Of a DNA stretch of 64,000 nt, positions 1,047-24,629 are shown one piece after another. The number at the start of each line of letters is the position of its first letter. Positions within the stretch are counted from its first letter, which is position 1. The notes beneath the pieces are model-generated. The model searched no databases and had not been told where the DNA came from. It saw only the letters and a list, made by a program, of their open reading frames with translations. Both the position numbers and the translations under genes were made by a program. The DNA lies in IMG/VR virus record IMGVR_UViG_3300048008_000449, positions 1 through 64,000 of that record. The stretch is one strand, 5' to 3'.

Positions 1047-1060
1047 ATAAATATATTTAT
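1047..1060. promoter_or_regulatory. Perfect 14-bp palindrome ATAAATATATTTAT: two back-to-back T4-late-like (TATAAATA-type) motifs between divergent genes
   Basis: Read directly from the sequence; lies between the KdoO-like gene (-) and the first radical SAM gene (+). Confidence 0.5.
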
Positions 1061-1739
1061 GACAGTTGATAATGGTACATATGCTGGTTTAAATATAAAT
1101 TTTATGCGAGTTGGCAGAAGATTTAATGTTGATGCTAGTACCAGATGTAATTTATTATGCCCAGGTTGTACAAGAACACAAGACATGGCGGCTGGAAATC
1201 GTAATTGGGATATAACAGATTTAAAACTTGAATACTTACAAGCATTGTTACATCCTAGAAATAGAATTAGTTGTGTTACTTATAATGGTGCTCTTAGCGA
1301 TCCAATATACAGTGGTACAATGACAGAACAATTGGAATATATTAATACTTTAGAATTTAGACCCAGAGTAATTATTTCAACTAATGGCAGTGGACGTAAT
1401 GAAAAGTGGTGGAAACATTTTTCTAGTTTATTAAGAAAACAAGATTGGCTACAATTTAGCATTGACGGATTAGAAGATACTAATCACATATATAGAGTCA
1501 ATGCAAGATGGAATAGTATTATGGCAGGAGTAAAAACTGTCAGAGAAAATTGCAATGGAAGTCTATGGTGGAGATACGTAGTGTTTGAACACAATTATCA
1601 TCAAGTAGGTAAAGCTAAACAATTAGCTGAGGAGTTGGGATTTGATAAATTTCAACCAATGGTTGGTGATAGAAGAACTCCGGCACATATGTTATTAAAA
1701 AGTGCAACATGGCAAGAGATATTAAATGATATATCCTAG
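1059..1739 (+). CDS. Radical SAM protein, core only (SPASM domain encoded by the next gene)
   Basis: CNLLCPGC (CxxxCxxC), STNG, FSIDGLEDTNHIYR, VFEHNYHQV; paralogous to the N-terminal part of 3469-4530; true start may be slightly downstream. Confidence 0.9.
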   Translation: MTVDNGTYAGLNINFMRVGRRFNVDASTRCNLLCPGCTRTQDMAAGNRNWDITDLKLEYLQALLHPRNRISCVTYNGALSDPIYSGTMTEQLEYINTLEFRPRVIISTNGSGRNEKWWKHFSSLLRKQDWLQFSIDGLEDTNHIYRVNARWNSIMAGVKTVRENCNGSLWWRYVVFEHNYHQVGKAKQLAEELGFDKFQPMVGDRRTPAHMLLKSATWQEILNDIS

Positions 1740-2079
1740 ATGCAAAGTAGTAGGACCAAACGCTAACTCAGAAGCAATGTCAATGAGATTTGACGGCTAT
1801 GTTGTTCCATGTTGTCATATGAATAGTCAACATGCAATGGATAAGTTATCATTGTTCTTGGGTAAAGATGTAAAAAATATACACATTACAAGTGGACATA
1901 GTATAGATGAAATAAATACTAGCAAAGAATATAAACGTATTGAAGATAGTTGGAACACACCTACACCTTTTTCAATTTGTAAAAGTGCATGTGGTAGACC
2001 AGGTGAAATAGGTCCAGACATACATCGCACAGGAACACAATTCGTTCAAAAGACTTTAAACAAGGATACACATGAATAA
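1726..2079 (+). CDS. Stand-alone SPASM/Twitch Fe-S domain protein
   Basis: PRC..MSMRFDGYVVPCCHM..ICKSACG matches the C-terminal SPASM region of 3469-4530 (CPW..QIDPWGTVWPCCHV..CQRTCG). Confidence 0.8.
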   Translation: MIYPRCKVVGPNANSEAMSMRFDGYVVPCCHMNSQHAMDKLSLFLGKDVKNIHITSGHSIDEINTSKEYKRIEDSWNTPTPFSICKSACGRPGEIGPDIHRTGTQFVQKTLNKDTHE

Positions 2080-3139
2080 ATCAGTAAATGCATGGAGCGA
2101 GTTTCAACCGCTAAAAAAAGTAGTGCTTGGCGCTCCGTTTCCACCTGAAACATTTGATTGGCATAAGGACAAAGAGACTCGTGATGTTATGCGTCAGATC
2201 TTTACAGAAACAGCAGAGGACTTACAAGTGCTGGAGGGGATATTAAAGGGCAAAGGTATTGAAGTAATACGTCCAAAGAATATATTTACAATCACAGGTG
2301 AAGAACAGATTCAATTACCATGGATGCATTGTGGTTTTCCAAACCACCCATTAATGCCACGTGATACATTAATGCCATATGGTAATAGTATTTTTGAACT
2401 GTTTACAGGTAGCGATAATCGCTACTTTGAAAATCTCGCATATTACGATCATTGTAGTAAATGGTTTCGTGAAGGTGCAGATTGGGTTAGTATGCCAGGA
2501 GTACTAGTAGAGAGTGGTAAAAAATACGACCACTTTGTAAAAAACGATCGACTGCTTTATCATGCGGCTAATATGATAAAGTGTGGACGCCACGTTTTGT
2601 TTAGCCAACCTTACGAGGGAGACAATAAACGAGGCAGAGGAACGGCACTGGGCCGCGAATGGATTCAACGTGAAATAAAGTTGCGATATCCAGACACCCA
2701 ATTTTTGGACATACCAGTAGGAGGACACATCGACGGAAAAATAGCTCTACTAAAACCTGGCGTACTGATGACCTGGAATAAAAACTGGGTACCAGAAGAA
2801 ATGAAAAACTGGACTATTATTGAAGTAGATGATGACTTTGATATGCCCGAAGACTTTCAACAAACTCGTAAGCGTAGATTTCATAAAGAATATGTAAGCA
2901 AGTGGTTAGAGCATTGGGTAGGTTGTCCAGATGAAAGTGTGTTTGATGTTAATGTATTATCATTAGATGAAAGCACAGTTATTTGTACAGGAAAAAACGA
3001 ACAAGCATTTGCTGAAATGGAAGCACACGGCATTGAACCAATTTACTGGAATTTTAGACATCAGTATTTTTGGGATGGTGGCATTCACTGTTTAACAAGT
3101 GATATAGTTAGAGAAGGAGATTGTGAGAGTTATGTATAA
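2072..3139 (+). CDS. Amidinotransferase (arginine:glycine / inosamine-phosphate amidinotransferase family, pentein fold)
   Basis: NAWSEFQPLKKVVLG, PRD, GHIDG, GGIHCLTSD with the catalytic Asp/His/Cys pattern. Confidence 0.88.
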   Translation: MNKSVNAWSEFQPLKKVVLGAPFPPETFDWHKDKETRDVMRQIFTETAEDLQVLEGILKGKGIEVIRPKNIFTITGEEQIQLPWMHCGFPNHPLMPRDTLMPYGNSIFELFTGSDNRYFENLAYYDHCSKWFREGADWVSMPGVLVESGKKYDHFVKNDRLLYHAANMIKCGRHVLFSQPYEGDNKRGRGTALGREWIQREIKLRYPDTQFLDIPVGGHIDGKIALLKPGVLMTWNKNWVPEEMKNWTIIEVDDDFDMPEDFQQTRKRRFHKEYVSKWLEHWVGCPDESVFDVNVLSLDESTVICTGKNEQAFAEMEAHGIEPIYWNFRHQYFWDGGIHCLTSDIVREGDCESYV

Positions 3140-3476
3140 TCATTTAAAAAATTACATTGGAATATATCTATTAGCAATGGTATGTTTTCTAATATATGCA
3201 TCTGAACCAACAGATGAAATACCAGTTTGGATATGGTATCTTTTCATTCCAGTAGTTTTATGGAAAACGCCACCGTTTAATATTGGTGATTGGTTTTGGG
3301 GTAAAGTAGCAAGTTTTTGGATGTGGATATTGAAACCATTTACAAGATGGCAAAACACTTGGCCTACATGGGTAAAGTATGTGTTTGGTATTGTACTTAT
3401 TATATTGTTTGAAGAATATATTTTAAAGCCAGCAGGCTACACAATGTATCCTTGGAGAATAGATTTTAATGGCTGA
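3132..3476 (+). CDS. Small Trp-rich integral membrane protein, unknown function
   Basis: Several hydrophobic aromatic-rich segments; ATG at 3132 overlaps the upstream stop like neighbouring genes. Confidence 0.65.
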   Translation: MYNHLKNYIGIYLLAMVCFLIYASEPTDEIPVWIWYLFIPVVLWKTPPFNIGDWFWGKVASFWMWILKPFTRWQNTWPTWVKYVFGIVLIILFEEYILKPAGYTMYPWRIDFNG

Positions 3477-4530
3477 TATAATGGAATGGCATAAAAATGT
3501 TACTTCATTGCAGTTTGACATTAGTAGTCATTGCAATGCACGTTGCGGTGCATGTGTAAGAAACAAAGATGGCGGGGAAACTGAATCAAATTTAGAACTA
3601 GCACATTTTGATTTTGACTTATGGAAACGTATAGCATATGAAGATACTAAACGTTGGTATATACATAGACTAAATCTAAATGGAAATTGGGGCGATCCAA
3701 TGATGCATCCAAAATTAGTAGAAATGATGGAAGTATGGTTAGATGCACACCCAAGAAGTACACCATCAATTGCAACAAATGGAAGTATGAGAGGACCAAA
3801 GTTTTGGCATGACTTAGCTAGTGTAATGCATCACTTTCCAAATCATAAAGTAGACTTCTCAATTGATGGAATGGGAGACACACATAGCATATATCGTAGA
3901 CGTACAGACTTTAATAAAATTTGTGAAAATGTAAAATCGTTTTCCGAAGCAGGCGGGCATGCTACAATACAATTTACAATGTTTGAACATAACGAACATC
4001 AGCATAAAGAAGTTGAAGATTTAGCAAGGTCGTTAGGAGCAATGCAACTTGTTAAACGTAGAAGTCATTCTTCAAATATGGTTATAAAAGATAAAGATGA
4101 AGAATATAAAATAACAGCAACTGAAGGTATTCCAGAAGAAAGAATAAAATTAAAAGATGATAGAATTGAAAGTACAAATCCACACAAAGTACATATATTA
4201 GAAGCAAGTGATATGTATGATACTTATTTGAACACTTCAGAAAAACAAAAAACAAAATGTCCTTGGTACAATGCACAAGAGATTCAAATTGATCCTTGGG
4301 GTACAGTTTGGCCATGTTGTCATGTTAGTCTATTTGGAGTTCATTTAGAAAAGCATAATATTGCTAATGAAGTAGATGAAACATTTGTACAGGCTAGAAA
4401 AGATAATAATTTAAAAGATAGTTCTTTGTATGATATATTAAAGTCTGATTGGTATAACGAACATGTTAAGTTAAGCGTCAAAGGCGCAAAATGGAAAACA
4501 TGTCAACGAACATGTGGAGTTGAAGCATAA
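3469..4530 (+). CDS. Radical SAM protein with C-terminal SPASM/Twitch domain
   Basis: CNARCGAC, NGNWGDPM in place of GGEP, ATNG, FSIDG; C-terminal C..PCC..C...C. Confidence 0.92.
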   Translation: MADIMEWHKNVTSLQFDISSHCNARCGACVRNKDGGETESNLELAHFDFDLWKRIAYEDTKRWYIHRLNLNGNWGDPMMHPKLVEMMEVWLDAHPRSTPSIATNGSMRGPKFWHDLASVMHHFPNHKVDFSIDGMGDTHSIYRRRTDFNKICENVKSFSEAGGHATIQFTMFEHNEHQHKEVEDLARSLGAMQLVKRRSHSSNMVIKDKDEEYKITATEGIPEERIKLKDDRIESTNPHKVHILEASDMYDTYLNTSEKQKTKCPWYNAQEIQIDPWGTVWPCCHVSLFGVHLEKHNIANEVDETFVQARKDNNLKDSSLYDILKSDWYNEHVKLSVKGAKWKTCQRTCGVEA

Positions 4531-5780
4531 TGTATAAAAATCCTATGTTAGATGATCATAGATTCCCTACATGTTTAGCACCATGGAACGCATTAACTAT
4601 TAAGTGGGGCGGTGCAGTATTGCCTGACATTATTTACAATGGCAAGTTTGGAAACATTACAAGACAAACATTACCAGAGATATTAAACAGTGAAGAAGCA
4701 GTAGCATTGCGTAAGTCGCATGCAAGTAGAATAGTTCCAGAAGCATGTTTAGCATGTACCAAAAAAGAACAAAGCGGTAAAAGTCGTAGAATGTATTTTT
4801 GGGATAAACTTGATGTCGATGTTAAAAAAGGAAGTATTAAGAACACAGCAAACAGTAAGCCTGACATACGTTATTTAGATTTTACAATCAGTAATAAATG
4901 TAATTTAGCATGCATACATTGTAATCCTTTTGTAAGTACAGGGTGGACCAAAGATGGAAAGAAACTAAACAAAGAAAAGCCAGACTATTGGAAACAAGCA
5001 CAAATAGGATATCACGGTGTAGAAGATATGACATTCCTTGATAACTTGTTTGCTGATCCAGACTATTTTCGTAACCTACAGTGGGTAGCATTAAGAGGCG
5101 GAGAGCCATTGTATGATGAGAGTTGTAAAGCAATATTACAGTGGTTTATTGATCAAGGACTAGCAAAGAATATTATGCTAGACATTAGTACAAATGCTAC
5201 AGTTTTCGATGATGACTTTCAGGAGATATTTAAACACTTTAAGCATATTGAATTGCTTATCAGTATTGAAGCAGTAGATGAATTATACAGTGTAGTACGA
5301 GGAGGATCGTATACATTTAAAGAATTAGAAGAAAACATAGAAAAGTTTTATACATATCCTAACATTGAAGTTGTGTTTGCAGTAACAGTTATGTTAACAA
5401 ACGTATTTGGGTTAGACAAAGTATGGGACTGGTTTAAAGAAAAACACATGCATAGAGCAAGTATAAGCATGAGTAATGTTGTAGTTAATCCTACATATTT
5501 AAATATTGCATACATGCCAGATGTGTTAAAATATATTATGTATGATAAGCTATTGTCTATTCCAGATCAAAGCATTTGGCCTAAAGGCAGTTATCATGTA
5601 GACGAAATACATTACCAAACTGGAATACATGCTATCAGAGATGGATTACAAGTTGAGGTAAACGAAAAAGAACAAGAAAAGCAATGGGATTGGTTTGTCA
5701 AGTATACAAAAGACTTAGACAGATTACGTGGAACAAACACGTTTGAATTAATAAAGGAGTTAAAATTATATGAACAGTAA
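4530..5780 (+). CDS. Radical SAM protein with N-terminal SPASM/Twitch-like domain
   Basis: N-terminal CLAPWNAL..CLAC; CNLACIHC; GGEP; STNA; SIEA..YSVVRG. Confidence 0.93.
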   Translation: MYKNPMLDDHRFPTCLAPWNALTIKWGGAVLPDIIYNGKFGNITRQTLPEILNSEEAVALRKSHASRIVPEACLACTKKEQSGKSRRMYFWDKLDVDVKKGSIKNTANSKPDIRYLDFTISNKCNLACIHCNPFVSTGWTKDGKKLNKEKPDYWKQAQIGYHGVEDMTFLDNLFADPDYFRNLQWVALRGGEPLYDESCKAILQWFIDQGLAKNIMLDISTNATVFDDDFQEIFKHFKHIELLISIEAVDELYSVVRGGSYTFKELEENIEKFYTYPNIEVVFAVTVMLTNVFGLDKVWDWFKEKHMHRASISMSNVVVNPTYLNIAYMPDVLKYIMYDKLLSIPDQSIWPKGSYHVDEIHYQTGIHAIRDGLQVEVNEKEQEKQWDWFVKYTKDLDRLRGTNTFELIKELKLYEQ

Positions 5781-6708
5781 CCCAGATTTTGGTACCAGTG
5801 GCAACAGCGTCTGGAATCAACAATATTTTGATTTTTTAAATGAAACATTCTTTCCTAAAATTGATATCACTACAATTGCTGATGAATCAAATATTATGCT
5901 TGATAGATATCAAGGATGGATAGAAAGTAGTACATTAAATAAATTTAAAGGACTAGACGCATTTCCAATGCGTTATGCAAGCGTTGGTACTACGCAAGCG
6001 TTAGATTGGTGGCATTATTATTGTGCAGTTAACAACATGGATCTAAAAATGTTTAGAGGAGAGTACCCATATCATAGAGATGCATACTTACAAACTCATT
6101 TGGGTTGGGATGATTGTATTGAAGATTGTGGATTAATTGCAGGTGATGCAGTTGTAGTAAGTGTTCCATTTAGTGCAACAGGCAGACTTCCAATACAATG
6201 GGAAGACTTAATGAAAACATGTAACAGACTAAAGATTCCAGTGTTTGTTGATTGTGCATGGTTTGGAACTTGCTTTGGTATTACTGTTAACTTAGATGAA
6301 CCATGTATTAAAATGGTTGCATTTAGTACAACAAAAGGACTTAGTTGTGGTAACTGGCGTGCAGGTATTGTGTTTAGTAAAGTAAACGAAAAAGACTTTA
6401 AACGTGCTACTGATGGTAGCTTAGAAACACAAACAGATTGGAATCATGGTAATCATCTTAATACTGCTATTGCTAACAGATTAATGGCAGAGTTTTCACC
6501 AGATACTATTCCTAAAAAATATATGGCATCGCACATGGCAGTATGTAAACATTATGGATTAATTCCTACACAAACTGTACATATTGCAGAAGGTGCTCGT
6601 GGAACTGAATGGGACGTATTTCATAGAGATGAAACATACAATAGAATTAATATTTCAAAAGCATTGAAGCGACACAAGAACAAGGGAAACTTTTATGACA
6701 ACATATGA
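5770..6708 (+). CDS. PLP-dependent transferase (fold-type I, aminotransferase-like)
   Basis: VFVDCAWFG (DxA aromatic) and FSTTKGLSCGNWRAG (S.SK..G.R.G PLP-lysine motif). Confidence 0.75.
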   Translation: MNSNPDFGTSGNSVWNQQYFDFLNETFFPKIDITTIADESNIMLDRYQGWIESSTLNKFKGLDAFPMRYASVGTTQALDWWHYYCAVNNMDLKMFRGEYPYHRDAYLQTHLGWDDCIEDCGLIAGDAVVVSVPFSATGRLPIQWEDLMKTCNRLKIPVFVDCAWFGTCFGITVNLDEPCIKMVAFSTTKGLSCGNWRAGIVFSKVNEKDFKRATDGSLETQTDWNHGNHLNTAIANRLMAEFSPDTIPKKYMASHMAVCKHYGLIPTQTVHIAEGARGTEWDVFHRDETYNRINISKALKRHKNKGNFYDNI

Positions 6709-7147
6709 TGATCCTATTAACATAACAACTAAAGGACAATATCCAATTAGAGCCCATATGGTATTTAATAACATGGGTCCAGAAAACTGTGAAGATATCC
6801 TTTGGCAGAATGTAATAGATTCAACAAGTAATCTTGAAGGAAACGAAATAGGTGTAAGTGTAACACAGAGTTATCAATATACAAAGTTAAATGACGATCC
6901 AACTATTATGGTTAGATGGCAAGGTATTAAGACTACAAATGGTAATGAATTTAGAATTGGTCTAGGAAAAGGAATACCAGCAGATAAAAGAACACCACCT
7001 ATAATGTCTGGCAATATGAAAACCGGAGTGCAAGTCAATAGTACACTATCTATACAATCAGTAAAACTAGGTTGTGTAAATGGAGAGTTTGCAATTGAAA
7101 AAGATGGCAAATGGTATGCTATTCAAATAGGAGAAGCTATTGAATAA
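6695..7147 (+). CDS. Hypothetical beta-rich protein with no enzyme motif recognised
   Basis: 150-aa ORF overlapping both neighbours; no motif recognised. Confidence 0.7.
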   Translation: MTTYDDPINITTKGQYPIRAHMVFNNMGPENCEDILWQNVIDSTSNLEGNEIGVSVTQSYQYTKLNDDPTIMVRWQGIKTTNGNEFRIGLGKGIPADKRTPPIMSGNMKTGVQVNSTLSIQSVKLGCVNGEFAIEKDGKWYAIQIGEAIE

Positions 7148-8276
7148 ACTTCCTAGTAATGCTTGTGTGTATCCATTCAAAGCTGAAATGCTTATGCATG
7201 GACAACCTGCGACTCCTTGTTGTAGGTTTCATACTAGATTTTTAAAAGGAAAAGGTTTTAACGAAATACGTGAAACTATGATGCGTAATGAATGGCACCC
7301 AGGTTGTTATAAATGTAAATCAGATGAAGAAGTTAAAGGTAGCAGTATGAGAACTGAGGCTGACGAATTCTTTGATGACTTTACAGACACTGTACGTTTA
7401 GAGTACTTAGAAATAACAGTGGGTAGACTTTGCAATTTAGCATGTTTAAGTTGTGGAAGTGAATTCAGTCATACATGGGACAAAGACGAAATAGCATTGG
7501 GAATAAGTAGCGAAGACAAAATTAAAAAATTAAAAGAAGTACAAGAATATGATTTAGATAATTTAGATTTAAATAATTTAAAGCATGTTAAATTTATTAA
7601 AGTAACAGGTGGTGAACCATTTTTACACAAACAGTTTTTAAATCTTATAGTTAGGTTAGCGGACAGTGAACTAGCAGGACAAATTAGCTTAGAGATATTT
7701 ACAAATTGTACATGGTATCCAGCCAAACTTGAACTAGATGCATTAATGAAATTTAAACATATACAACTAAGTCCTAGCATAGATGGTGTAGGTAGTACAA
7801 ATGACTTACTACGTTACCCATCTAAGTGGGAAAAAATAGAAGCTACACTTGACAAGTGGATTGAACTTAGAGACGCTACAGGACGCTTAAATATAGCTAC
7901 AGCCACCACTGTAAGCGTTATTAACGCTCCACAGCTACATGAGTTTATACATTGGGCAAGAGTGCATAAAGGAATAGGAGTTATACTACAGACGGTATAT
8001 GAGCCACACTATATGAGTGTAGAGCATTGGCCAGATTGGTATAAACAAACATTAGATATGATTGTTGAACAGCAATTTTCAGGGTTCAACAAAAATGCAG
8101 GTAAATTTAAGACTGCATATAAACTTTTAAAGAAGCTATGCAAATCGCATAGTAAAAAAGACAATAGTATTATGTATAAGACAGAACTAAAACATATACT
8201 GAAACACCGAGGCCAAGACATTAGTATGGCACCAAAATTTAAGAATATATTAGAGTATCATGATAAACAAGGATAA
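7140..8276 (+). CDS. Radical SAM protein with N-terminal SPASM/Twitch-like domain
   Basis: ACVYPF..PCCRF..CYKC; CNLACLSC; TGGEPF; FTN; SIDG. Confidence 0.93.
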   Translation: MNKLPSNACVYPFKAEMLMHGQPATPCCRFHTRFLKGKGFNEIRETMMRNEWHPGCYKCKSDEEVKGSSMRTEADEFFDDFTDTVRLEYLEITVGRLCNLACLSCGSEFSHTWDKDEIALGISSEDKIKKLKEVQEYDLDNLDLNNLKHVKFIKVTGGEPFLHKQFLNLIVRLADSELAGQISLEIFTNCTWYPAKLELDALMKFKHIQLSPSIDGVGSTNDLLRYPSKWEKIEATLDKWIELRDATGRLNIATATTVSVINAPQLHEFIHWARVHKGIGVILQTVYEPHYMSVEHWPDWYKQTLDMIVEQQFSGFNKNAGKFKTAYKLLKKLCKSHSKKDNSIMYKTELKHILKHRGQDISMAPKFKNILEYHDKQG

Positions 8277-9519
8277 ACTAAAGAAAAGCAAAACATTCTG
8301 CATGCTACCGTTTATGCATATTTACGGAACAGCAGGCGGAGACATTGTGCCGTGTTGTGAGGCACAAGAAATCCCATTGAATAAACCAGGGGAGACAGCT
8401 CTTGAAAGCTGGAATAACGAAAACTATAAAGAGCTAAGACGGGCTTTGGCAGAGGACGAAAGACCAGAACGTTGTAATGTGTGCTGGCACTTAGAGGATA
8501 GCGGCATTGTAAGCAACCGTCAACAATGGGAAAAAGACAACTGGAAAGACTTCAGTGACAAAGTTAAAGTCAATGATGATTTCAGTGTTGATAATAAACC
8601 TATGTGGGTAGAACTTAAAGTAAGTAACTTTTGCAATTTAAAATGTATTATGTGCAGTACACATAGTAGTTATAAACGTGTAAAAGACTTAGATATTATT
8701 AAGAAGTATACAAAAGATGGCTACGAAACTAGACTTTTACGACCTACGGATTTATTCGCAAGTTTAAATGAATGGCCTGATCTATGGGATAATGTTCACA
8801 CACTACAATTTACAGGGGGTGAACCAATCATTAATCAAGAGCATTATGACTTACTAGAAGGAATACCCACAGAAGTTAAATCAAAAATTAAATTACGTTA
8901 TGCAACAAATATAAGTCATATTAAATTTAAAAAATACGACTTAGTTGAAATGTGGAGACAATTTAAACATGTTAACATTAAAGTAAGCATGGATGGCGTT
9001 GAAGAAGTATACAATTATATTAGACAAGATGGTGATTGGGATACAGTATATAACAATATGCTTGTTCTTAATGCAGAACCAACAATAGATCTTGCTGTTG
9101 GTATAACAGTGCAATCTCATAACATTTATCATATGCCAGAGTTTTATCAATTTTGGAAAGAAAGTCCAATTGAATTAAAGTTTATTACAGCCAACGTATT
9201 ACAAACGCCAAAGTATCTAAGACCAAACTTATGGCCTCAACCATATAGAACTAAAATAATTGATAGACTAAGAGAAGCATATGAATGGTATCCAGAAATG
9301 GAAAGGTTTATAACGTACATGGAAAATAATCCACCAGATGAATTAAACTATACCAAGATGAGAAAATATACTAGAGATCTTGAAAACAGGTATCCCAAAG
9401 ATACTACACTAAAGTCAATGATAAAAGATCATTTAGGAATAAAACTGGAAGGAATGGACGAGGTCGATCAGCGAGTGAAAGATCAAGAAGCAGCATTTTT
9501 TAAAGGATTCAAACGATGA
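8260..9519 (+). CDS. Radical SAM protein with N-terminal SPASM/Twitch-like domain
   Basis: FCMLPFMH..PCC..CNVC; CNLKCIMC; TGGEP; YATN; SMDG..YIR. Confidence 0.94.
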   Translation: MINKDKLKKSKTFCMLPFMHIYGTAGGDIVPCCEAQEIPLNKPGETALESWNNENYKELRRALAEDERPERCNVCWHLEDSGIVSNRQQWEKDNWKDFSDKVKVNDDFSVDNKPMWVELKVSNFCNLKCIMCSTHSSYKRVKDLDIIKKYTKDGYETRLLRPTDLFASLNEWPDLWDNVHTLQFTGGEPIINQEHYDLLEGIPTEVKSKIKLRYATNISHIKFKKYDLVEMWRQFKHVNIKVSMDGVEEVYNYIRQDGDWDTVYNNMLVLNAEPTIDLAVGITVQSHNIYHMPEFYQFWKESPIELKFITANVLQTPKYLRPNLWPQPYRTKIIDRLREAYEWYPEMERFITYMENNPPDELNYTKMRKYTRDLENRYPKDTTLKSMIKDHLGIKLEGMDEVDQRVKDQEAAFFKGFKR

Positions 9520-15338: not shown

Positions 15339-15345
15339 ATAAATA
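15339..15345 (+). promoter_or_regulatory. ATAAATA late-type promoter motif in the only clear intergenic gap of the cluster
   Basis: CATAAATAG followed by an AAGGAG RBS and the ATG at 15370. Confidence 0.5.
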
Positions 15346-15369
15346 GTGCTATAACAAGGAGACAATACA

Positions 15370-16612: not shown

Positions 16613-17780
16613 ATTTTGCTACATGCCTTGGCATGCAATCACGTTGAGTGCAAATGGTGATATTAAGCCATGCTGTCAATTTAGTAATAAAGGTCGTTTA
16701 CCTAATACACAACATGAAACTATTATGGAAAACTTTAATAGTGAACGTATGCAAGAACTACGTAAAGACTTTCTAAAAGGTGTACAACCTAGTGCTTGCA
16801 ATAGTTGTTGGGAGAGAGAAGATTTAGTAGGACAAAGTAGACGCCTGTGGTTTAATAAAAAGTTTATGAAGTTTGATGCTGATTTTATAAATGGCAATAC
16901 ACCTGATACATATGATGTACCAAATCCAAAGTTCTATCAAGCAGATATTAACTTATCAAATGTGTGTAATTTAAAATGCCGTATGTGTGGAAGTTGGGCA
17001 AGTAACAGTTGGTTCGAAGAAGAAATAGCGTTAGCTAAAATAGACAAGCGTTATGAAAAGAATGAAAGAGCAGTTCCATTACAACAATATGGATTAGAAG
17101 ACTTACGCAATATGCTACCTCATTTAAAAGATGTAAAGCGTATAGACTTTAAAGGCGGAGAGCCTATGATGGCTAAACATCATAATCAATTCTTACAATG
17201 GTTGATTGATGAAGATATGACTAACATTGAATTATTTTACACAACAAACGGAACAGTACAAAATCCTAAAATACTGAACTTGTTAAAACAGTTTAAACGT
17301 GTTAGTATATGTTTTAGTATAGAAGGTACTGGAGAACTATATAGATATATTAGAGGTGGCAAATACGAACTAGAAGATTTTGAATTCACACTATCAGAAT
17401 ATGATAAGTTACCAAATGTACAAATTATGTTTAATGTAACATTACAAAATTATAATGTATTTAACTTACCAGACTTGCATTTTTTCTTGCATGAAATGGA
17501 AGATAAATACGAGAGAGTAAGTGCTAACAGTAGTTTCACTACTATCTGTAACAAACCAGCATATTTAAGTCCAATGAACTTGCCAGATGATTTACGAGAT
17601 AAAGCAATTAAAAACTTATCCTTGTTTGAAGATTTTGACAAGTTAGTTGAGAGTATGAAAGCTAGAACATTTAATCCTGAACTATGGGATACATTTATTA
17701 ACTTTACAAACGACTTAGATAAAATGCGAGGAGATAGTGTAGTTAAAGCTGTACCTCAACTAAAGGAATATTTTAAATGA
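16605..17780 (+). CDS. Radical SAM protein with N-terminal SPASM/Twitch-like domain
   Basis: FCYMPWH..KPCC..CNSC; CNLKCRMC; GGEP; TTNG; SIEG..YIRG; start set at ATG 16605. Confidence 0.94.
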   Translation: MNKFCYMPWHAITLSANGDIKPCCQFSNKGRLPNTQHETIMENFNSERMQELRKDFLKGVQPSACNSCWEREDLVGQSRRLWFNKKFMKFDADFINGNTPDTYDVPNPKFYQADINLSNVCNLKCRMCGSWASNSWFEEEIALAKIDKRYEKNERAVPLQQYGLEDLRNMLPHLKDVKRIDFKGGEPMMAKHHNQFLQWLIDEDMTNIELFYTTNGTVQNPKILNLLKQFKRVSICFSIEGTGELYRYIRGGKYELEDFEFTLSEYDKLPNVQIMFNVTLQNYNVFNLPDLHFFLHEMEDKYERVSANSSFTTICNKPAYLSPMNLPDDLRDKAIKNLSLFEDFDKLVESMKARTFNPELWDTFINFTNDLDKMRGDSVVKAVPQLKEYFK

Positions 17781-19799: not shown

Positions 19800-20157
19800 T
19801 TTTAAAAATATAATAACACATTACAGTGATGGTACAAGTGAAGAAGATAATGTAAATAATGTAATGGCACGAGATGAAAATGATTTCCGTGGTTGGGAAT
19901 GTTGGGCTGGTGTACAAAATATTACAATAAGCAATACAGGTGATGTGTATAGAGCAATATGCAAAGTAGGAGGCAAACTAGGAAACATATATGATGGATT
20001 TGAAATGCCACTTGAAACAATTATTTGTAACAAGCCTAGATGTATATGTGCCGCTGATGTACAACTATCAAAAGCACAACCAGAGCATGTTACAAAATTA
20101 AGAGTAGGAAAAGATTGGATGGACGATGTTTATAGTTCGGGTATAAAAGATGAGTAA
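19792..20157 (+). CDS. Stand-alone SPASM-like domain protein
   Basis: FRGWECWAG..G.VYR..C..LGNI..GF..C...C.C.AD.Q.SK matches the C-terminus of 23454-24629 (FEGWECSSG..C..LGNI.TGF..C...C.SSADSKIPK). Confidence 0.82.
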   Translation: MNNFKNIITHYSDGTSEEDNVNNVMARDENDFRGWECWAGVQNITISNTGDVYRAICKVGGKLGNIYDGFEMPLETIICNKPRCICAADVQLSKAQPEHVTKLRVGKDWMDDVYSSGIKDE

Positions 20158-21457
20158 ACAAAGCAATTATGAAAAGTTCTACGAGAACGCTATAGGAAAA
20201 ATTGGCAAACTGCCAGTGGATAAAGAATCATTTTGTCCATTGCCATTTGTACATGTAAGCACTATGCCGCATGGAGAAGTTAAACTATGTTGTAGAGCAC
20301 AACCACCAAAGAATGGAAAAAATCCAAATGTTAAAGATGAAGATTTTAATCTAAAAGATTATTGGCACAGTGAGTATATGAATGAGATACGAGATTCCTT
20401 AATCACAGGTGAGAAACATCATCAGTGTAAAAATTGTTGGAAGATGGAAGATAATAACATTGTTAGTTTACGTATGAATAGATTAACAGATTTAATGGAA
20501 ACTCCATCAACCAGAAATGCAGTTGAAAAATATTTAGTAGATAGAGAAGTAGATTTTAAAATTCCACTGATAGAACTTAAACTAAGCAACGTATGTAATT
20601 TTAAATGTCGTATGTGTTGGCCAAAAGACAGTTCAAAGTGGATGCAAGATTGGGATAAAGTAAAACAATTCTATAATAAAAATGACAGAGAATATGTAGA
20701 TGAAATTGTAGACAGTAATGATTTACGTAAATCTAGAGTAATGAACTTGTATGAAAAAGATGAACATTTTGTTCCACAATTATTAGAAGTAATGGAAACT
20801 GTAGAAGAGATTGAATTTGCAGGCGGTGAGCCACTTATGGATCCTATTCATTATCGTGTATTAGACAGTATTCCACATCCAGAAAACGTTACATTAAAAT
20901 ACAGTACAAACCTAAGTATTATGAAAATGGGTAAACATAGTGTTATTGACTTATGGAAAAAATTTAAAAGCATTAAACTAACAATCAGTATTGATGGACA
21001 CAAAGAGCTTAATGCTAAAATAAGAAGAGGGTCTGATTGGGAACTATTAAAAAGTAACATTAACTTAGTTAAGAAAGAATTAACTAATATTGATGTTATC
21101 AAAGGAACTACATGTATTAGCGGAATGAATGCAAAAGAACTAGGCGAAACAGCTGAAGCTATTGTATTCGAATTAGGTATACACTGGCATACAAGCCGTG
21201 TACAATGGCCTGATTTCTTACATGCTAACGTATTACGCCCAACGGAGCTTCAAGGTGGAATAGACGGCTTAAAACGGGTATTTGATAGCTTAAACCTACC
21301 AGAAAGACGTATGGTAGGTAGACGCTTTATGTTTGAAACACATTTAAATGGTGCTATGCATTGGCTACAATCTTGTATTGACAATAACAAGCACGAAGAA
21401 AAATACGAAGCATTTTGTAAGTTTAATCAGACAATTACGGACATTGATGATGACTAA
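20150..21457 (+). CDS. Radical SAM protein with N-terminal SPASM/Twitch-like domain
   Basis: FCPLPFVH..KLCC..CKNC; CNFKCRMC; AGGEP; YSTN; SIDG. Confidence 0.94.
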   Translation: MSKQSNYEKFYENAIGKIGKLPVDKESFCPLPFVHVSTMPHGEVKLCCRAQPPKNGKNPNVKDEDFNLKDYWHSEYMNEIRDSLITGEKHHQCKNCWKMEDNNIVSLRMNRLTDLMETPSTRNAVEKYLVDREVDFKIPLIELKLSNVCNFKCRMCWPKDSSKWMQDWDKVKQFYNKNDREYVDEIVDSNDLRKSRVMNLYEKDEHFVPQLLEVMETVEEIEFAGGEPLMDPIHYRVLDSIPHPENVTLKYSTNLSIMKMGKHSVIDLWKKFKSIKLTISIDGHKELNAKIRRGSDWELLKSNINLVKKELTNIDVIKGTTCISGMNAKELGETAEAIVFELGIHWHTSRVQWPDFLHANVLRPTELQGGIDGLKRVFDSLNLPERRMVGRRFMFETHLNGAMHWLQSCIDNNKHEEKYEAFCKFNQTITDIDDD

Positions 21458-22496
21458 GAAGTTAGCAATATTTGGTAATAGCTTTGGAACGCAACTCGCA
21501 GACCCTGCAAAAAGAGTATGGGAGTTAATGCCAAGCAAAGAGAGAAAAATAGAATTTAGAAAAGCATGGTATAATGAAATGCCTAGCTGGATTAGAATGC
21601 TTAAAAATGAATATGATGTAGTGCATACATTTGCTGTTGGCAATACAGGTATAGATTATAGTTACTTACAATTTTTAAGATATCACAATGAGTATGATAC
21701 TGTAATATTCATAACAACACGAGCATGGACTCATTCACATATACAATATGGTAATCAAGTAGAGGAATGGCGAGGCGAAGCTTCTATACATGATATTGAT
21801 TTTATAAGACCCGAATGGATGTTAGATGAAAGACCAATTAATTGTTACAAAAAGTTCGCTGAAAAAATACTTAAATCAAATAATAAACCAACTGGTCCTG
21901 AAATGCCTATATATGATGAAGATGCAATAAACTTAATGAAAGTATATGTTGACTACGGTACACATGTTGTTCCCAAATTTCCATTTAGAGATCTGTTACA
22001 ATGGGCATCAATGATTGATAATATAATTAGAACTAGACCAGATGTTAAAATGATAAACACTAGTCCAGAAGAGTTTAATGATCTTGGAATTAAAATACCA
22101 ATTGGAAAAATACAAACTTTACATAGAATGGAAAATGATATTTTACTAGGCAAACATGCAGAGTATGAATTTAGAAAAGCTCAGGGTTTACCGTTAGATG
22201 AAGATGGGAAACTTGTTGCTGGATTAGATGATGCATTGCAACAGATGCCTGTTTTAAAATTGTACAGTGATGCTAGAGTAGGACACTTATCAACAGAAGC
22301 ACATAGGTTAATATATGCTGAAGTAAAAGATTTATTAGCATCCAACAATACTTGGTTAGATTTTGATTTAGATGCTATGGTTAAAAAACTTATGGAAATG
22401 AATTTAGATAAAAAGAGATATTTTGTTGCAGAACACAAAGACATTAAATCATGGGCTAAATATAATAACTTATGGATTGATGAGGAAGTAAAATGA
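21450..22496 (+). CDS. SGNH/GDSL-hydrolase-like protein
   Basis: IFGNSFG (block I), FAVGNTG (block II), DARVGHL (D..H); start set at ATG 21450 (21447 also possible). Confidence 0.55.
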   Translation: MTKKLAIFGNSFGTQLADPAKRVWELMPSKERKIEFRKAWYNEMPSWIRMLKNEYDVVHTFAVGNTGIDYSYLQFLRYHNEYDTVIFITTRAWTHSHIQYGNQVEEWRGEASIHDIDFIRPEWMLDERPINCYKKFAEKILKSNNKPTGPEMPIYDEDAINLMKVYVDYGTHVVPKFPFRDLLQWASMIDNIIRTRPDVKMINTSPEEFNDLGIKIPIGKIQTLHRMENDILLGKHAEYEFRKAQGLPLDEDGKLVAGLDDALQQMPVLKLYSDARVGHLSTEAHRLIYAEVKDLLASNNTWLDFDLDAMVKKLMEMNLDKKRYFVAEHKDIKSWAKYNNLWIDEEVK

Positions 22497-23464
22497 GTAT
22501 AGGAATTTTTGGCGATAGTTTTGCAAGGTGTAAAGTTCCATTAATGCATCCTTTAGACCCAAGTAATATTAAAACAGTAATACATACAAATGATGAATAT
22601 ATTAACTTCCAACAAAAAGTAGAAGCACTGATGCCAACTTGGGCTAAGTTATTACCAGATACTACAAATTTTGCAGCAGGCGGTACAGATTTATCTTGGA
22701 GTTTTTTAAAGTTTTTAGAACACCATGAAAAGTATGATAACATTATTTTTGTAGTTACATCGCCAAAAAGAATAACACTAAATGCTCCTCATATGTATGT
22801 GCCAAGTGACAGAGGAAGTAAATTTGGAGTAAATTTGATAACATCAGTAAGTGCTAATCAATCACTTCTTAAAAAAGAAAAGTTTTGTAATTCTGTAAAT
22901 GAAGAACATCTATATGTACGTGATGCTTACGATGCAATTAACAAATGGCAGACTCATATTCAACCAGAGTTTCCTGAAAGAGATTTCTTACATTACGGAA
23001 TATTAATTAATGAGTTGCAACGTATAAGACCAGATATTAAATTAATAAAAGCATTTTGTCACCCTACAGCAGATGATGAATGGAAGATGAAAGATTTTGG
23101 CAAAAAAAATTACTATCCATACAAGCATTTTGATAATATTCCACTTGACAATAAAGCTGAATACCTGCATAATATAGTAAAAGTTGAAGATTCTAATTAT
23201 TTTGAAGAACAAATAGCACAACCTAATAAATGGCATGATTGCAGATCAGGACATATAAGTATTACTTCGCATGTAATATTATATAAAATAATAACAAAGT
23301 GGTTAAAAACTAATGATACATGGCTTAACTTTGATATAGAAGAATTTAAAAATAATAAAGTAGATGCAAATGATAGCTTTATGGATAAAAGTAAATCGTT
23401 ACCAGAATGGCAAGATGCATTCCTACAAAGACGTATTAATGATGGAAAAATAAATGGAAGATAA
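22493..23464 (+). CDS. SGNH/GDSL-hydrolase-like protein, paralog of 21450-22496
   Basis: IFGDSFA, NFAAGGTD..WSF, DCRSGHI; shared FP.RD.L..RPD.K.I and WL.FD blocks. Confidence 0.6.
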   Translation: MSIGIFGDSFARCKVPLMHPLDPSNIKTVIHTNDEYINFQQKVEALMPTWAKLLPDTTNFAAGGTDLSWSFLKFLEHHEKYDNIIFVVTSPKRITLNAPHMYVPSDRGSKFGVNLITSVSANQSLLKKEKFCNSVNEEHLYVRDAYDAINKWQTHIQPEFPERDFLHYGILINELQRIRPDIKLIKAFCHPTADDEWKMKDFGKKNYYPYKHFDNIPLDNKAEYLHNIVKVEDSNYFEEQIAQPNKWHDCRSGHISITSHVILYKIITKWLKTNDTWLNFDIEEFKNNKVDANDSFMDKSKSLPEWQDAFLQRRINDGKINGR

Positions 23465-24629
23465 AGATTTAAAATGGAGTGAATATGATTTCACTAAAAC
23501 ACCGTACGATAAACTAGTACGTGTTGGACAACGAAATATGTTGTATAGAGACATGTTTACTGTTAGCTGGTTAATAGGAAGATTTTGTAATTACAATTGT
23601 AGTTATTGTTGGCCTTATGCTAGAAGTAGTAGAAAAGATCATAGACCAACTGAACTTAATTTAAAAACAATTGATGAGATTAAGCGTCAAGCACGTGAAA
23701 GAGGATTCAATAGTTTTCACTTTAGTTTAAGTGGGGGTGAGCCTACATTCCATCCTGGCTATTTAGATATGTTAAAACATTTAAGTGATGATGCACATAA
23801 TACAAATTATACAAGTGTGCATATGACTTCAAACTGTAGTCGTAATATGAAATGGTTTCAAACATATTGTGATTATGCTAGTAAGTTTCACAGAGCAAGT
23901 ATAACAGCAAGTTTACATGTTGAACACGTAAACACACCTGAAAAAATGCAAGACCTTGCAGACAAATTAATACTATGTCAAGAGCATGATGTACAAGTAA
24001 CAATTAATATGGTTATGGTACCTGCATTATTTGATGAATATTATGACAACGCATTATTCTTCCATAATCAAGGAATCAATGTTACACTAAAACCTCAATC
24101 AGATCCAACAGCAAGTAGAATTGTTGATGGTTATACAGATGAAATGAAAAGAAAATTACACAATGGTATGCCACAACGTAGTTACACTGAAGCTAAAGCA
24201 CAACAAAAGCAATTAGTAACTAGACCTAAGCCTACATTTAAAATTGACCCTGATGATCATTTCCGTAAACAGACAGCATCAGTTCCGTGGAACATGCAGG
24301 TGGAATTTAGAGATGATAAAGGTGATCCGTGGTATATGGATCAAGCTGAAAGATTTAATGCATTTAATTTTAATCAATTTGAAGGTTGGGAATGTAGTAG
24401 TGGATATCGTAGTATAATTATACGTGAACCAGATGGATCAGTTAAAAGGTCTTACTCATGTCATGATCAACCTTTAGGTAATATTGAAACTGGATTTAAA
24501 TTGTTTGATGGTCCAAAAGTATGTACTACAAAATCTTGTGTATCAAGTGCTGATAGTAAAATACCAAAACGAGCACCAGGAACAGCTATGCCCCTTTGGC
24601 CCGGTGATGATACTTTCTTTGAAGATTAA
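23454..24629 (+). CDS. Radical SAM protein with C-terminal SPASM-like domain
   Basis: SWLIGRFCNYNCSYC, SGGEPT.HP, TSN; C-terminal WEC..C..C...C. Confidence 0.93.
   Translation: MEDKDLKWSEYDFTKTPYDKLVRVGQRNMLYRDMFTVSWLIGRFCNYNCSYCWPYARSSRKDHRPTELNLKTIDEIKRQARERGFNSFHFSLSGGEPTFHPGYLDMLKHLSDDAHNTNYTSVHMTSNCSRNMKWFQTYCDYASKFHRASITASLHVEHVNTPEKMQDLADKLILCQEHDVQVTINMVMVPALFDEYYDNALFFHNQGINVTLKPQSDPTASRIVDGYTDEMKRKLHNGMPQRSYTEAKAQQKQLVTRPKPTFKIDPDDHFRKQTASVPWNMQVEFRDDKGDPWYMDQAERFNAFNFNQFEGWECSSGYRSIIIREPDGSVKRSYSCHDQPLGNIETGFKLFDGPKVCTTKSCVSSADSKIPKRAPGTAMPLWPGDDTFFED

Follow-up and report, generated by a model that had tools for sequence, protein, structure and literature searches.

A conserved radical-SAM gene cluster shared in its parts by a marine T4-like jumbo phage lineage and predatory Bdellovibrionota

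Why would a marine T4-like jumbo phage carry, in one run of genes, a dozen or more radical-SAM (rSAM) enzymes together with amine- and guanidine-installing enzymes? This question was raised by a first-pass annotation of the DNA analyzed here (the "window", positions 1 to 64,000 of IMG/VR record IMGVR_UViG_3300048008_000449, 64,000 nucleotides), which described 12 rSAM enzymes and several tailoring enzymes in a coupled operon of about 23.5 kb and inferred a dedicated pathway of sequential radical steps on one substrate class, be it virion proteins, a virion or host-surface glycan, or a small molecule. The observation itself proved to be correct. We found 25 co-directional ORFs between positions 1059 and 24629, with overlaps at 21 of 24 junctions, and a further coupled ORF of 46 aa that fills a gap of 129 nt and brings the total to 26. 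Exactly 12 of the 25 ORFs, namely those listed as radical-SAM proteins in this interval of the table, carry the CxxxCxxC motif, and all 12 recover PF04055 in profile searches. Ten of these score above the gathering threshold, whereas ORFs 1059 and 3469 score 27.3 against a cutoff of 29.5, but are supported by NCBIfam, PHROG and paralogy. Eight of the 12 pass the curated cutoff of NCBIfam NF033640, a family with an N-terminal twitch Fe-S domain (hereafter N-twitch). No member of this family has a known function, and a literature search recovered no paper on it.

The remaining assignments of the first-pass annotation fared unevenly. The amidinotransferase, the PLP enzyme, the AspH-like oxygenase, the paralog pairs 9649/10926 and 21348/22493, and the PolB and clamp-loader genes of the genomic context are confirmed. 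Of the two genes described as free SPASM domains, 1726 is confirmed, whereas 19792 has no Pfam hit but is homologous to the C-terminus of 23454. The nitroreductase and the SDR are only weakly supported. The pair called unknown paralogs, 9649 and 10926, are predicted to fold as GT-A-like plus methyltransferase-like proteins. In contrast, no tool supports the two SGNH-like assignments, for which only an N-terminal FG(D/N)SF motif is visible. Nor are the T4-type late motifs supported, because TATAAATA is depleted rather than enriched, with 4 occurrences found against 13.7 expected. The start codons chosen in the first-pass annotation for the fifth and sixth N-twitch paralogs are probably right, as they give the recurrent 8-nt overlap and homologues are 405 aa long; the same rule suggests the alternative start given in the table for ORF 21348.

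Table 1. Features of the cluster and its surroundings in the 64,000-nt window, with the observations on which each reading rests
Positions	Strand	Feature	Basis
194..1186	-	Divergent cluster member with a conserved LHLD...ITH (HxD...H) motif, read as a putative Fe(II)/2OG-type oxygenase; true start probably the MTRIA methionine near 1024	Homologous to a 297-aa gene inside the Bdellovibrionota cluster (1.4e-21); present in 24 viral loci; motif and start taken from the alignment; no Pfam or PDB hit
975..1003	+	Perfect sigma-70-type consensus (TTGACA, 17 nt, TG-TATAAT), 56 nt upstream of the first operon gene; putative promoter	Consensus match only
1059..1739	+	Radical-SAM core without auxiliary domain; N-part of a split copy of the 3469 type	CNLLCPGC motif; PF04055 27.3 bits; 28% identity to 3469; phrog_21308 1.4e-19
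1726..2079	+	Free-standing SPASM/twitch Fe-S domain protein; C-part of the split enzyme	PF13186 25.1 bits (cutoff 21.5)
2072..3139	+	Amidinotransferase, which transfers an amidino group from arginine to an amine	PDB hits HsvA (4.9e-25), SxtG, StrB1 and AGAT; MPRD, HID and GGIHC motifs align with the catalytic residues (Cys/His/Asp); Bdellovibrionota orthologues about 358 bits
3123..3476	+	Small hydrophobic, Trp-rich protein, probably in the membrane; variable part of the cluster	Sequence inspection; no family hit
3469..4530	+	Radical-SAM enzyme with a C-terminal SPASM domain	Pfam and NCBIfam profiles, motif; Bdellovibrionota homologues
4530..5780	+	N-twitch radical-SAM paralog 1	NF033640 254 bits (cutoff 170); its phage orthogroup is sister to three Bdellovibrionota proteins, support 96
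5770..6708	+	PLP-dependent enzyme of fold type I, resembling class I/II aminotransferases	PF00155 25.1 bits; Asp161 invariant, Lys189 nearly invariant in FSTTKGL; AF2 pLDDT 84.6; Foldseek matches aminotransferases and CobD at 6e-10
6695..7147	+	Unknown 150-aa protein; variable part of the cluster	No family hit; present in only a few relatives
7140..8276	+	N-twitch radical-SAM paralog 2	NF033640 219 bits
8260..9519	+	N-twitch radical-SAM paralog 3	NF033640 319 bits; sister to a Bdellovibrionota protein, support 99
9516..9656	+	Coupled 46-aa ORF of helical character; not a conserved precursor candidate	Outside the identical contigs, a similar 46-aa ORF seen only in one other (L002)
9649..10926	+	Predicted two-domain protein: GT-A-like N-domain plus class I SAM-methyltransferase-like C-domain	AF2 pLDDT 84.7; Foldseek PDB hits Mimivirus R699, PBCV-1 A64R, LARGE1, LH3, AviRa, NNMT; BFVD gives full-length matches in uncultured phages, then GT-A and MTase proteins; G238 and D261 invariant; no conserved DxD
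10926..12326	+	Paralog of 9649	9.5e-9 to 9649; in a Bdellovibrionota MAG this family is fused to the AspH-like domain in a 740-aa protein
12323..13096	+	Asp/Asn beta-hydroxylase-like Fe(II)/2OG oxygenase	PF05118 44.7 bits
13074..14126	+	N-twitch radical-SAM paralog 4	NF033640 200 bits
14095..15336	+	N-twitch radical-SAM paralog 5; likely true start 14119	NF033640 381 bits; 1351 homologues, mostly metagenomic including Tara entries; groups with two Bdellovibrionota proteins, support 96
15370..16035	+	Nitroreductase-like flavoenzyme, weakly supported; variable part of the cluster	PF00881 21.3 bits (cutoff 23.5); a gene at the corresponding position in related contig L173 has a confident hit
16049..16612	+	Short Rossmann-type protein resembling an SDR, weakly supported	199-aa Bdellovibrionota homologue (119.5 bits) annotated adh_short_C2 (weak); PDB SDR hit only 0.12
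16578..17780	+	N-twitch radical-SAM paralog 6; likely true start 16605	NF033640 317 bits
17777..18499	+	Short radical-SAM protein; N-half of the 23454 type	PF04055 64.3 bits; 35% identity to residues 20-114 of 23454; split kept in relatives at 82-93% identity
18492..19799	+	N-twitch radical-SAM paralog 7	NF033640 266 bits
19792..20157	+	Free Cys-rich domain homologous to the C-terminus of 23454	5e-10 to 23454; weak hit to the STM4011 C-terminus
20150..21457	+	N-twitch radical-SAM paralog 8	NF033640 302 bits
21348..22496	+	Unknown protein with an N-terminal FGNSF motif; likely true start 21450	No family hit; paralog of 22493
22493..23464	+	Paralog of 21348 with an FGDSF motif	Paralogy to 21348; no family hit
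23454..24629	+	Radical-SAM enzyme with a C-terminal Cys-rich domain; scores highest of all cluster proteins against its Bdellovibrionota counterpart	PF04055 52.6 bits; Bdellovibrionota orthologues 496-536 bits; 4743 homologues, of which the top 120 are at least 75% identical
54405..55709	-	Outlying ninth N-twitch-like radical-SAM gene next to PolB; may not belong to the pathway	SPASM-like region at residues 34-97, rSAM region at 134-272; long branch in the tree

Does the run of genes end where the first-pass annotation placed its limits? Our analysis indicates that the unit is larger than 23.5 kb, as it includes the divergent gene upstream of the operon and runs off the left end of the window. 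An identical contig adds three further N-twitch rSAMs, two further amidinotransferases and, lying among the rSAM genes just left of the window, a PNP_UDP_1 (5'-deoxyadenosine/MTA-nucleosidase-like) gene (2.7e-17), for a total of at least 34 kb and about 15 rSAM enzymes. The cluster is conserved in every related marine viral contig compared: all 17 IMG/VR contigs found with one of its rSAMs keep its core. In all 9 phage contigs reconstructed over about 24-34 kb this core comprises 8-12 N-twitch rSAMs, 1-3 amidinotransferases, one PLP enzyme, 2-3 GT-A/MTase proteins, an AspH-like protein, a nucleosidase-like protein and the family of the divergent gene. A related Tara scaffold has SufE inside the cluster. 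The paralogs are only 21-31% identical to each other, but 60-90% identical to their orthologues, and the GC content of the cluster (0.332) equals that of the rest of the window (0.342).

The cluster is also not phage-specific, as Bdellovibrionota chromosomes carry orthologues of its parts, paralog by paralog. A 3.04-Mb Bdellovibrionales contig carries rSAM, PLP and SDR-like homologues. A Pseudobdellovibrionaceae contig, which is flanked by two-component and toxin-antitoxin genes, also carries the amidinotransferase and the AspH-like and GT-A/MTase domains fused in one protein. In a tree of 99 proteins the nine paralogs of the window sit in nine separate places, and several of them are sister to Bdellovibrionota proteins with support of 96-99.

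What, then, might this assemblage make? The interpretation offered in the first-pass annotation is partly supported: a dedicated, conserved and uncharacterized multi-step radical pathway in a viral genome is upheld, but its extent and its restriction to phages require correction, and of the three substrate classes it offered the evidence leans toward a small molecule or sugar. Our preferred reading, which we hold with no more than moderate confidence, is that this is one biosynthetic or tailoring pathway rather than a chance accumulation of rSAM genes, long resident in the genome of a marine T4-like jumbo phage lineage and present as the same pathway in Bdellovibrionota. In this view about 11 divergent N-twitch rSAMs and 4 other rSAM enzymes would each perform a different radical C-H activation on a common non-peptide scaffold, most likely a sugar, cyclitol or glycan-type small molecule, by dehydrogenation, epimerization, deoxygenation or decarboxylation of the BtrN/DesII/BlsE type. 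The PLP enzyme would aminate the keto intermediates, and one to three amidinotransferases would convert the new amines to guanidines with arginine as donor. The product would be further tailored by O2-dependent hydroxylases (the AspH-like and HxD...H proteins), the GT-A/methyltransferase-like proteins, and the SDR-like and nitroreductase-like reductases, whereas the nucleosidase encoded in the cluster would remove inhibitory 5'-deoxyadenosine. The gene content, catalytic motifs, conservation and orthology with Bdellovibrionota are established by our analysis, but the chemistry, the substrate class, the order of steps and expression during infection are matters of inference. Certain features sit uneasily with this proposal. 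No scaffold-forming enzyme (inositol or DOI synthase, sugar nucleotidyltransferase or 4,6-dehydratase) was found, no exporter or flippase was seen inside the cluster, and there is only one PLP enzyme for about 15 rSAMs, and the fold of this PLP enzyme resembles amino-acid aminotransferases and not the DegT class of sugar aminotransferases. Likewise, the GT-A-like domain lacks a conserved DxD, its nearest solved folds include protein-glycosylating enzymes such as LH3 and R699, and its fusion with an AspH-like hydroxylase would also suit protein modification.

The alternative that survives best, though we consider it unlikely, is peptide or protein modification, in which the rSAMs, the AspH-like hydroxylase and the GT-A/MTase proteins would modify a ribosomal peptide (RiPP) or a virion or cell-surface protein, and the amidinotransferases would convert Lys or Orn side chains to (homo)arginine. 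In its favor, most characterized multi-paralog SPASM/twitch rSAMs are peptide maturases, and the best PDB hits of the N-twitch profile include SkfB and CteB. The best-known members of the Asp/Asn beta-hydroxylases, for which PF05118 is named, act on protein residues, and the hydroxylase-GT-A/MTase fusion of Bdellovibrionota resembles the lysyl hydroxylase-glycosyltransferase LH3. However, no RRE/PqqD domain was detected in any of the 25 proteins, no protease was seen, no precursor peptide was found, the only small ORF is not conserved, and neither Cys-rich small ORFs nor collagen-like repeats occur in the window or in 7 related loci. The relatives of the amidinotransferase and the settings of solitary N-twitch rSAMs described below also argue against it.

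Nucleic-acid hypermodification appears more doubtful still. Jumbo and T4-like phages often hypermodify their DNA, and it is conceivable that the pathway builds an amino- or guanidino-bearing side chain on a DNA (or RNA) base or nucleotide precursor, which would protect phage DNA from host nucleases and help packaging. A possible early sigma-70-type promoter upstream of the operon, a PRPP synthetase gene in the window, an N-twitch-like rSAM and a weak DNA-methylase-like ORF next to PolB, and the presence of MoaA, viperin and BlsE, which act on nucleotides or nucleosides, among the fold relatives of the rSAM core are compatible with this. Against it, the orthologous clusters sit in Bdellovibrionota chromosomes among ordinary cellular genes with no phage or restriction genes seen beside them, and no hydroxymethylase, base kinase, aGPT-Pplase or TGT/DpdA-type gene was seen among the window ORFs scanned, which leave out the remaining 140 kb of the genome. 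Finally, a depot of independently acting auxiliary metabolic rSAM genes in a permissive genome region, linked only by a shared need for Fe-S clusters and SAM, is equally doubtful despite the variation of accessory genes between relatives (6695, 15370, 18492, 21348 and 22493), the placement of the Bdellovibrionota genes on both strands, and the great size of the N-twitch family (7553 clusters at E<=1e-30) and its single occurrence in unrelated clusters, because a core of roughly 10 families travels together across the 9 phage contigs and most of it is also found in two families of Bdellovibrionota, the genes are tightly coupled for translation, a Rosetta-stone fusion links two of the families, orthology holds paralog by paralog and a 5'-dA nucleosidase-like gene is embedded in the cluster.

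How does the cluster compare with known systems? No characterized pathway matched it. The suggestion of the first-pass annotation that such arrays might already have been recorded without a function is borne out, as Nishimura 2017 (PMC5332604) counted 12 rSAM genes in a 183-kb T4-like environmental genome, assigned no function to them and discussed them only in the context of Fe-S metabolism. The N-domain of the N-twitch rSAMs matches the BtrN twitch domain (6.6e-7), whereas their core matches SkfB, CteB, BlsE, MoaA and viperin. Single N-twitch rSAMs elsewhere lie in deoxysugar and lipid clusters: in Poseidonocella next to FdtA, an NDP-hexose 2,3-dehydratase and an EryCIII-like glycosyltransferase, and in Paenibacillus in an ACP/KS/KR/GT2 cluster. 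An amidinotransferase-PLP gene pair recurs next to an Orn/Arg decarboxylase in another contig of 346 kb that looks phage-derived, and the closest solved relatives of the amidinotransferase all act on small molecules.

The first-pass annotation had described a run of 12 radical-SAM genes with tailoring genes between 1059 and 24629, and this observation holds: that strand carries 25 ORFs of at least 80 aa, 21 of whose 24 junctions overlap, and a 46-aa ORF that overlaps both neighbours fills the one large gap of 129 nt. Twelve of the ORFs carry a CxxxCxxC motif at the positions it had listed, and all twelve hit PF04055. Two of the starts that it had chosen, 14119 and 16605, fit better than those of the longest ORFs, as they give the recurrent 8-nt overlap and homologues are 405 aa long, and by the same rule a third ORF, 21348, probably begins at 21450. 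Its interpretation was supported only in part, because the cluster is larger than it had proposed, and because neither its SGNH assignments nor its late motifs found any support. The individual features are collected in the table.

Features of the cluster and of its surroundings (single positions are ORF starts of the longest reading; bit scores are against NCBIfam NF033640, cutoff 170 bits)
Position	Strand	Assignment	Basis or remark
194-1186	- (divergent)	Member of a family with an HxD...H motif	Homologue inside the bacterial cluster
1059	+	Radical SAM	CxxxCxxC; below the NF033640 cutoff; with 1726 forms a split copy of the 3469 type
1726	+	Second part of that split copy	
2072	+	Amidinotransferase	HsvA 4.9e-25, SxtG 7e-20, StrB1 1.6e-16, AGAT about 1e-13, over residues 19-355
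3469	+	Radical SAM with C-terminal SPASM domain	CxxxCxxC; below the NF033640 cutoff
4530	+	N-twitch radical SAM	254 bits; CxxxCxxC; lacks the PCC cysteine
5770	+	Fold-type I PLP enzyme	Asp161 invariant, Lys189 nearly so; confident model resembles class I/II aminotransferases and CobD
7140	+	N-twitch radical SAM	219 bits; CxxxCxxC
8260	+	N-twitch radical SAM	319 bits; CxxxCxxC
9516-9656		46-aa ORF	Not conserved
9649	+	Predicted GT-A-like domain followed by predicted class I methyltransferase-like domain	Glycine of motif I and the acidic residue invariant; no conserved DxD
9799-9828	+	Perfect 12/12 sigma-70 consensus inside ORF 9649	Could be an internal promoter or chance
10926	+	As 9649	As 9649
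12323	+	AspH-like	
13074	+	N-twitch radical SAM	200 bits; CxxxCxxC
14095	+	N-twitch radical SAM	381 bits; CxxxCxxC; start probably 14119
15370	+	Weakly nitroreductase-like	
16049	+	Weakly SDR-like	
16578	+	N-twitch radical SAM	317 bits; CxxxCxxC; start probably 16605
17777	+	Radical SAM	CxxxCxxC; below the NF033640 cutoff; with 19792 forms a split copy of the 23454 type
18492	+	N-twitch radical SAM	266 bits; CxxxCxxC
19792	+	Second part of that split copy	
20150	+	N-twitch radical SAM	302 bits; CxxxCxxC
21348	+	No family assigned	SGNH call unsupported; start probably 21450
22493	+	No family assigned	SGNH call unsupported
23454	+	Radical SAM with C-terminal Cys-rich domain	CxxxCxxC; below the NF033640 cutoff
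30032-32071 and 36619-37254	-	PRPP synthetase, ClpP protease and a short FTR1 iron-permease-like ORF	
39564-40313	-	TauD-family dioxygenase	Part of the patch 39564-45800
40857-41798	-	TauD-family dioxygenase	Part of the patch 39564-45800
41801-42523	-	Fatty-acid desaturase/hydroxylase	Part of the patch 39564-45800
43687-44364	+	AMP-binding fragment	Part of the patch 39564-45800
45096-45800	+	Sulfotransferase-like ORF	Weak; part of the patch 39564-45800
54405-56808	-	Ninth N-twitch-like radical-SAM gene directly downstream of PolB; next ORF of 369 aa	Radical SAM on a very long branch of the family tree; weak DNA-methylase-like hit of the 369-aa ORF

The eight N-twitch proteins match the NF033640 model, "twitch domain-containing radical SAM protein" (N_Twi_rSAM), end to end, and in them the auxiliary-cluster domain lies before the barrel rather than after it (Pfam SPASM at residues ~15-95, radical SAM from ~120). 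Three cysteines of this N-terminal domain, C19, C89 and C92, are invariant, and a fourth, that of the PCC motif, is present in 7 of the 8. A profile of the eight aligns this domain to the twitch domain of BtrN (6.6e-7), whereas the barrel aligns to SkfB, CteB, BlsE, MoaA and viperin. The four remaining radical-SAM ORFs are of two types, each represented by an intact and a split copy, and as relatives keep the split of the 23454 type at 75-93% identity it is not an assembly error. In the amidinotransferase GGIHC aligns with GSFHC/GGFHC and HID with HID/HVD, and MPRD is also conserved; the designation of these as the catalytic Cys-His-Asp motifs is made by analogy with AGAT and StrB1. Single-sequence searches of the PDB gave nothing useful for 14095, 5770, 194-1186, a 470-aa ORF upstream, 16049, 22493 and 15370.

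The window equals the first 64 kb of the 204,772-bp IMG/VR contig 3300048008_000449, and its replication genes place it with the T4-superfamily jumbo phages: PolB is of the T4 type (phrog_262, 662 bits), with 44-48% identity to the PolB of the jumbo phages Atu_ph07, Phosso and GAP32, and a gp44-type clamp loader with AAA and Gp44_lid domains is present. However, the T4 late-promoter motif TATAAATA is depleted rather than enriched in the window (4 found against 13.7 expected), and no tRNA genes are present in the 64 kb. A perfect sigma-70 consensus lies 56 nt upstream of the first gene of the cluster, although this is a consensus match only. Outside the cluster, the patch of two dioxygenases, a desaturase/hydroxylase, an AMP-binding fragment and a sulfotransferase-like ORF is a second set of tailoring enzymes, which may be a separate lipid- or metabolite-modifying module.

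The divergent gene 194-1186 belongs to the cluster, and an identical contig that extends past the left end of the window adds two further amidinotransferase paralogs, three further N-twitch radical-SAM genes, a PNP_UDP_1 gene of the MTA/5'-deoxyadenosine nucleosidase type and several genes of unknown function, giving at least 34.4 kb with about 15 radical-SAM enzymes. MTA/SAH nucleosidases relieve radical-SAM enzymes of inhibition by 5'-dA, and a copy inside the cluster fits a heavy radical-SAM flux. A related Tara scaffold has SufE inside the cluster. All 17 viral contigs found with ORF 14095 carry most of the cluster, and in nine contigs reconstructed over 24-34 kb most of the core recurs, with 8-12 N-twitch radical-SAM proteins, 1-3 amidinotransferases, one PLP enzyme, 2-3 GT-A/methyltransferase-like proteins and 1-2 AspH-like proteins, together with the nucleosidase-like gene and the 194-1186 family, whereas 6695, 15370, 18492, 21348 and 22493 come and go. 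In one related marine contig, L173, an SbmA/BacA-type transporter-like gene (14888-15859 of that contig) lies about 4 kb downstream of the 23454 orthologue and is followed by an acetyltransferase and a methyltransferase-like gene. Paralogs are 21-31% identical to each other but 60-90% identical to their orthologues, which, together with the tree described below, rules out a recent duplication of these genes within the phage, and the GC content of the cluster matches that of the rest of the window. The 50,697 GenBank phage records hold only distant N-twitch relatives, in Vibrio and Ralstonia jumbo phages, and no homologue of 23454 or 9649; the RsoM2USA region is annotated only as hypothetical proteins.

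A scan of one genome per species with a back-translated CNLKCRMC motif, which yielded at least 120 loci and is biased by the motif, found N-twitch genes mostly in Bdellovibrionota, and 19 of the 22 sampled loci with two or more copies come from that phylum. Homologues of 2072 (about 358 bits), 5770, 12323, 16049, the 3469 type and 23454 (up to 536 bits) are found there too. A Pseudobdellovibrionaceae contig has 11 radical-SAM genes, the amidinotransferase and the PLP enzyme within 21 kb, as well as a 740-aa fusion of the AspH-like domain with the 9649/10926 family, and the cluster there is flanked by two-component and toxin-antitoxin genes. Another copy lies in a 3.04-Mb contig. Mis-binned phage contigs were considered as the source of these hits and rejected, as one locus lies in this 3.04-Mb contig, cellular genes flank the cluster, GC content is 0.39-0.50 there against 0.33 in the phage, and the genes lie on both strands. 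In a tree of 99 N-twitch proteins (FastTree, with some long branches) the nine window paralogs fall in nine separate places, and several phage orthogroups are sister to Bdellovibrionota proteins with support 96-99. The paralogs therefore diverged before the pathway was shared between phage and bacterium, in whichever direction it was transferred.

The N-twitch family is very large, with 7,553 clusters at 50% identity at E<=1e-30, yet searches of the literature on the family itself, on N-terminal SPASM domains, on radical-SAM enzymes of Bdellovibrio and on recent twitch-domain work found no characterized member. About 28 of its 36 top-scoring members in a representative protein library are proteins of ~800 aa or more with two or three matched stretches, and look like natural tandem fusions of two N-twitch units, while alphaproteobacterial and other members are fused to class I methyltransferase and TPR domains. 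Contextual evidence points towards a non-peptide substrate. Solitary members lie beside FdtA, an NDP-hexose 2,3-dehydratase and an EryCIII-like glycosyltransferase in Poseidonocella, and in Paenibacillus one sits in an ACP/KS/KR/GT2 cluster. All solved relatives of the amidinotransferase use small amines. A different contig that looks phage-derived, the 346-kb JGI contig L170, carries an amidinotransferase, a 239-aa ORF and a PLP enzyme in a small operon, with an Orn/Arg decarboxylase, three SPASM-first radical-SAM genes and a B12-binding radical-SAM gene nearby and ClpP close to the radical-SAM genes, which hints at polyamine or guanidine chemistry in other jumbo phages. Against such a substrate, no scaffold-forming or nucleotide-sugar enzyme and no exporter was seen inside the cluster, the PLP fold is of the amino-acid aminotransferase type, and the fusion of the hydroxylase with the GT-A-like family recalls the protein-modifying enzyme LH3.

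On balance, we consider it about as likely as not that radical C-H activations of the BtrN/DesII/BlsE kind act in series at different positions of one sugar-, cyclitol- or glycan-type scaffold, after which the PLP enzyme would aminate the keto intermediates, the amidinotransferases would convert the amines to guanidines, and hydroxylation, methylation and reduction would follow, with the nucleosidase clearing 5'-dA. The gene content, the sequence motifs, the conservation and the orthology with Bdellovibrionota are read directly from the sequences, whereas the binding of two [4Fe-4S] clusters, the reductive cleavage of SAM, expression during infection, the chemistry, the substrate class and the order of steps are inferred. 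Modification of a peptide or protein is a less likely alternative: the only unassigned small ORF is not conserved, no Cys-rich small ORF or collagen-like repeat was found in the window or in 7 related loci, and none of the 25 proteins has a Pfam or NCBIfam hit at E<=0.01 to an RRE/PqqD-like leader-binding domain, a leader protease or an exporter. Hypermodification of nucleic acids appears improbable; no hydroxymethylase, base kinase, aGPT-Pplase or TGT/DpdA-type enzyme was seen among the window ORFs scanned, a set that leaves out many small ORFs and the other 140 kb of the genome. That the genes share no common product is equally improbable.

A further possibility, more on the speculative side and doubtful on present evidence, is that during infection the phage runs a radical-SAM assembly line with no characterized counterpart, which makes a polycationic, multiply guanidinylated sugar-, cyclitol- or polyamine-like metabolite that is then packed with the DNA as a counter-ion, displayed on the virion, or used to remodel the host surface. 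In this view the N-terminal-twitch family would be a new class of small-molecule C-H-functionalizing enzymes, and the shared pathway would tie this abundant marine phage group to Bdellovibrionota, either as hosts or as gene donors. Irrespective of its product, the cluster takes roughly a sixth of a ~200-kb phage genome, encodes predicted oxygen-sensitive Fe-S enzymes, and is among the largest dedicated metabolic investments known in a phage. As orthology with Bdellovibrionota is observed paralog by paralog for several of the phage orthogroups, one solved reaction would annotate many genes in phages and bacteria. Homologues of two cluster proteins number in the thousands in public metagenome collections, including Tara Oceans data, and the product may therefore matter for phage-host biology in the sea. 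Unlike uncultured phages, Bdellovibrionota include groups that can be cultured, which would offer an experimental handle should such strains carry the cluster.

A comparable gene set had already been noted in the T4-like environmental viral genome TARA_ERS488813_N000010, a marine genome of 183 kb reported to carry 12 radical-SAM genes together with Fe-S-related genes (Nishimura et al. 2017, mSphere, PMC5332604). One related IMG/VR contig in our set is 183,842 bp long and is probably of the same phage group, an inference that does not rest on direct sequence comparison. That study counts the genes in a discussion of Fe-S metabolism and gives no family assignment, pathway or cellular counterpart. 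We found no published account of the family assignment, of the true extent and composition of the cluster, of the embedded nucleosidase or of the paralog-by-paralog orthology with Bdellovibrionota. NF033640 itself has only a structural name, and arrays of 8-12 of its paralogs in a phage are not described in any paper that we could find.

Multi-radical-SAM RiPP clusters, such as those of proteusins/polytheonamides and sactipeptides, resemble the present cluster in that several radical-SAM enzymes plus hydroxylases and methyltransferases act on one substrate, but differ from it in that no precursor peptide, RRE domain or protease was found here. The virus-encoded glycosylation machinery of giant viruses supplies the best solved-structure matches of the N-domain of 9649, namely PBCV-1 A64R and Mimivirus R699, and like them this would be a virus carrying its own tailoring enzymes. 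However, these matches are weak (E about 1e-4, TM 0.2-0.4), the DxD motif is not conserved, and the giant-virus clusters are built from nucleotide-sugar enzymes and not from radical-SAM enzymes. The BtrN/butirosin and StrB1/streptomycin aminocyclitol pathways share the proposed logic, in which a twitch-domain radical-SAM dehydrogenase makes a ketone, a PLP aminotransferase makes an amine and an amidinotransferase makes a guanidine. In contrast to these pathways, no DOI or inositol synthase or other scaffold-forming cyclase and no DegT-type sugar aminotransferase was found in the window cluster, its left extension or the Bdellovibrionota loci, and no kinase or classic glycosyltransferase is present here. 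The PLP enzyme is class I/II-like, the twitch domain is N-terminal rather than C-terminal, and there are about 15 radical-SAM enzymes instead of one.
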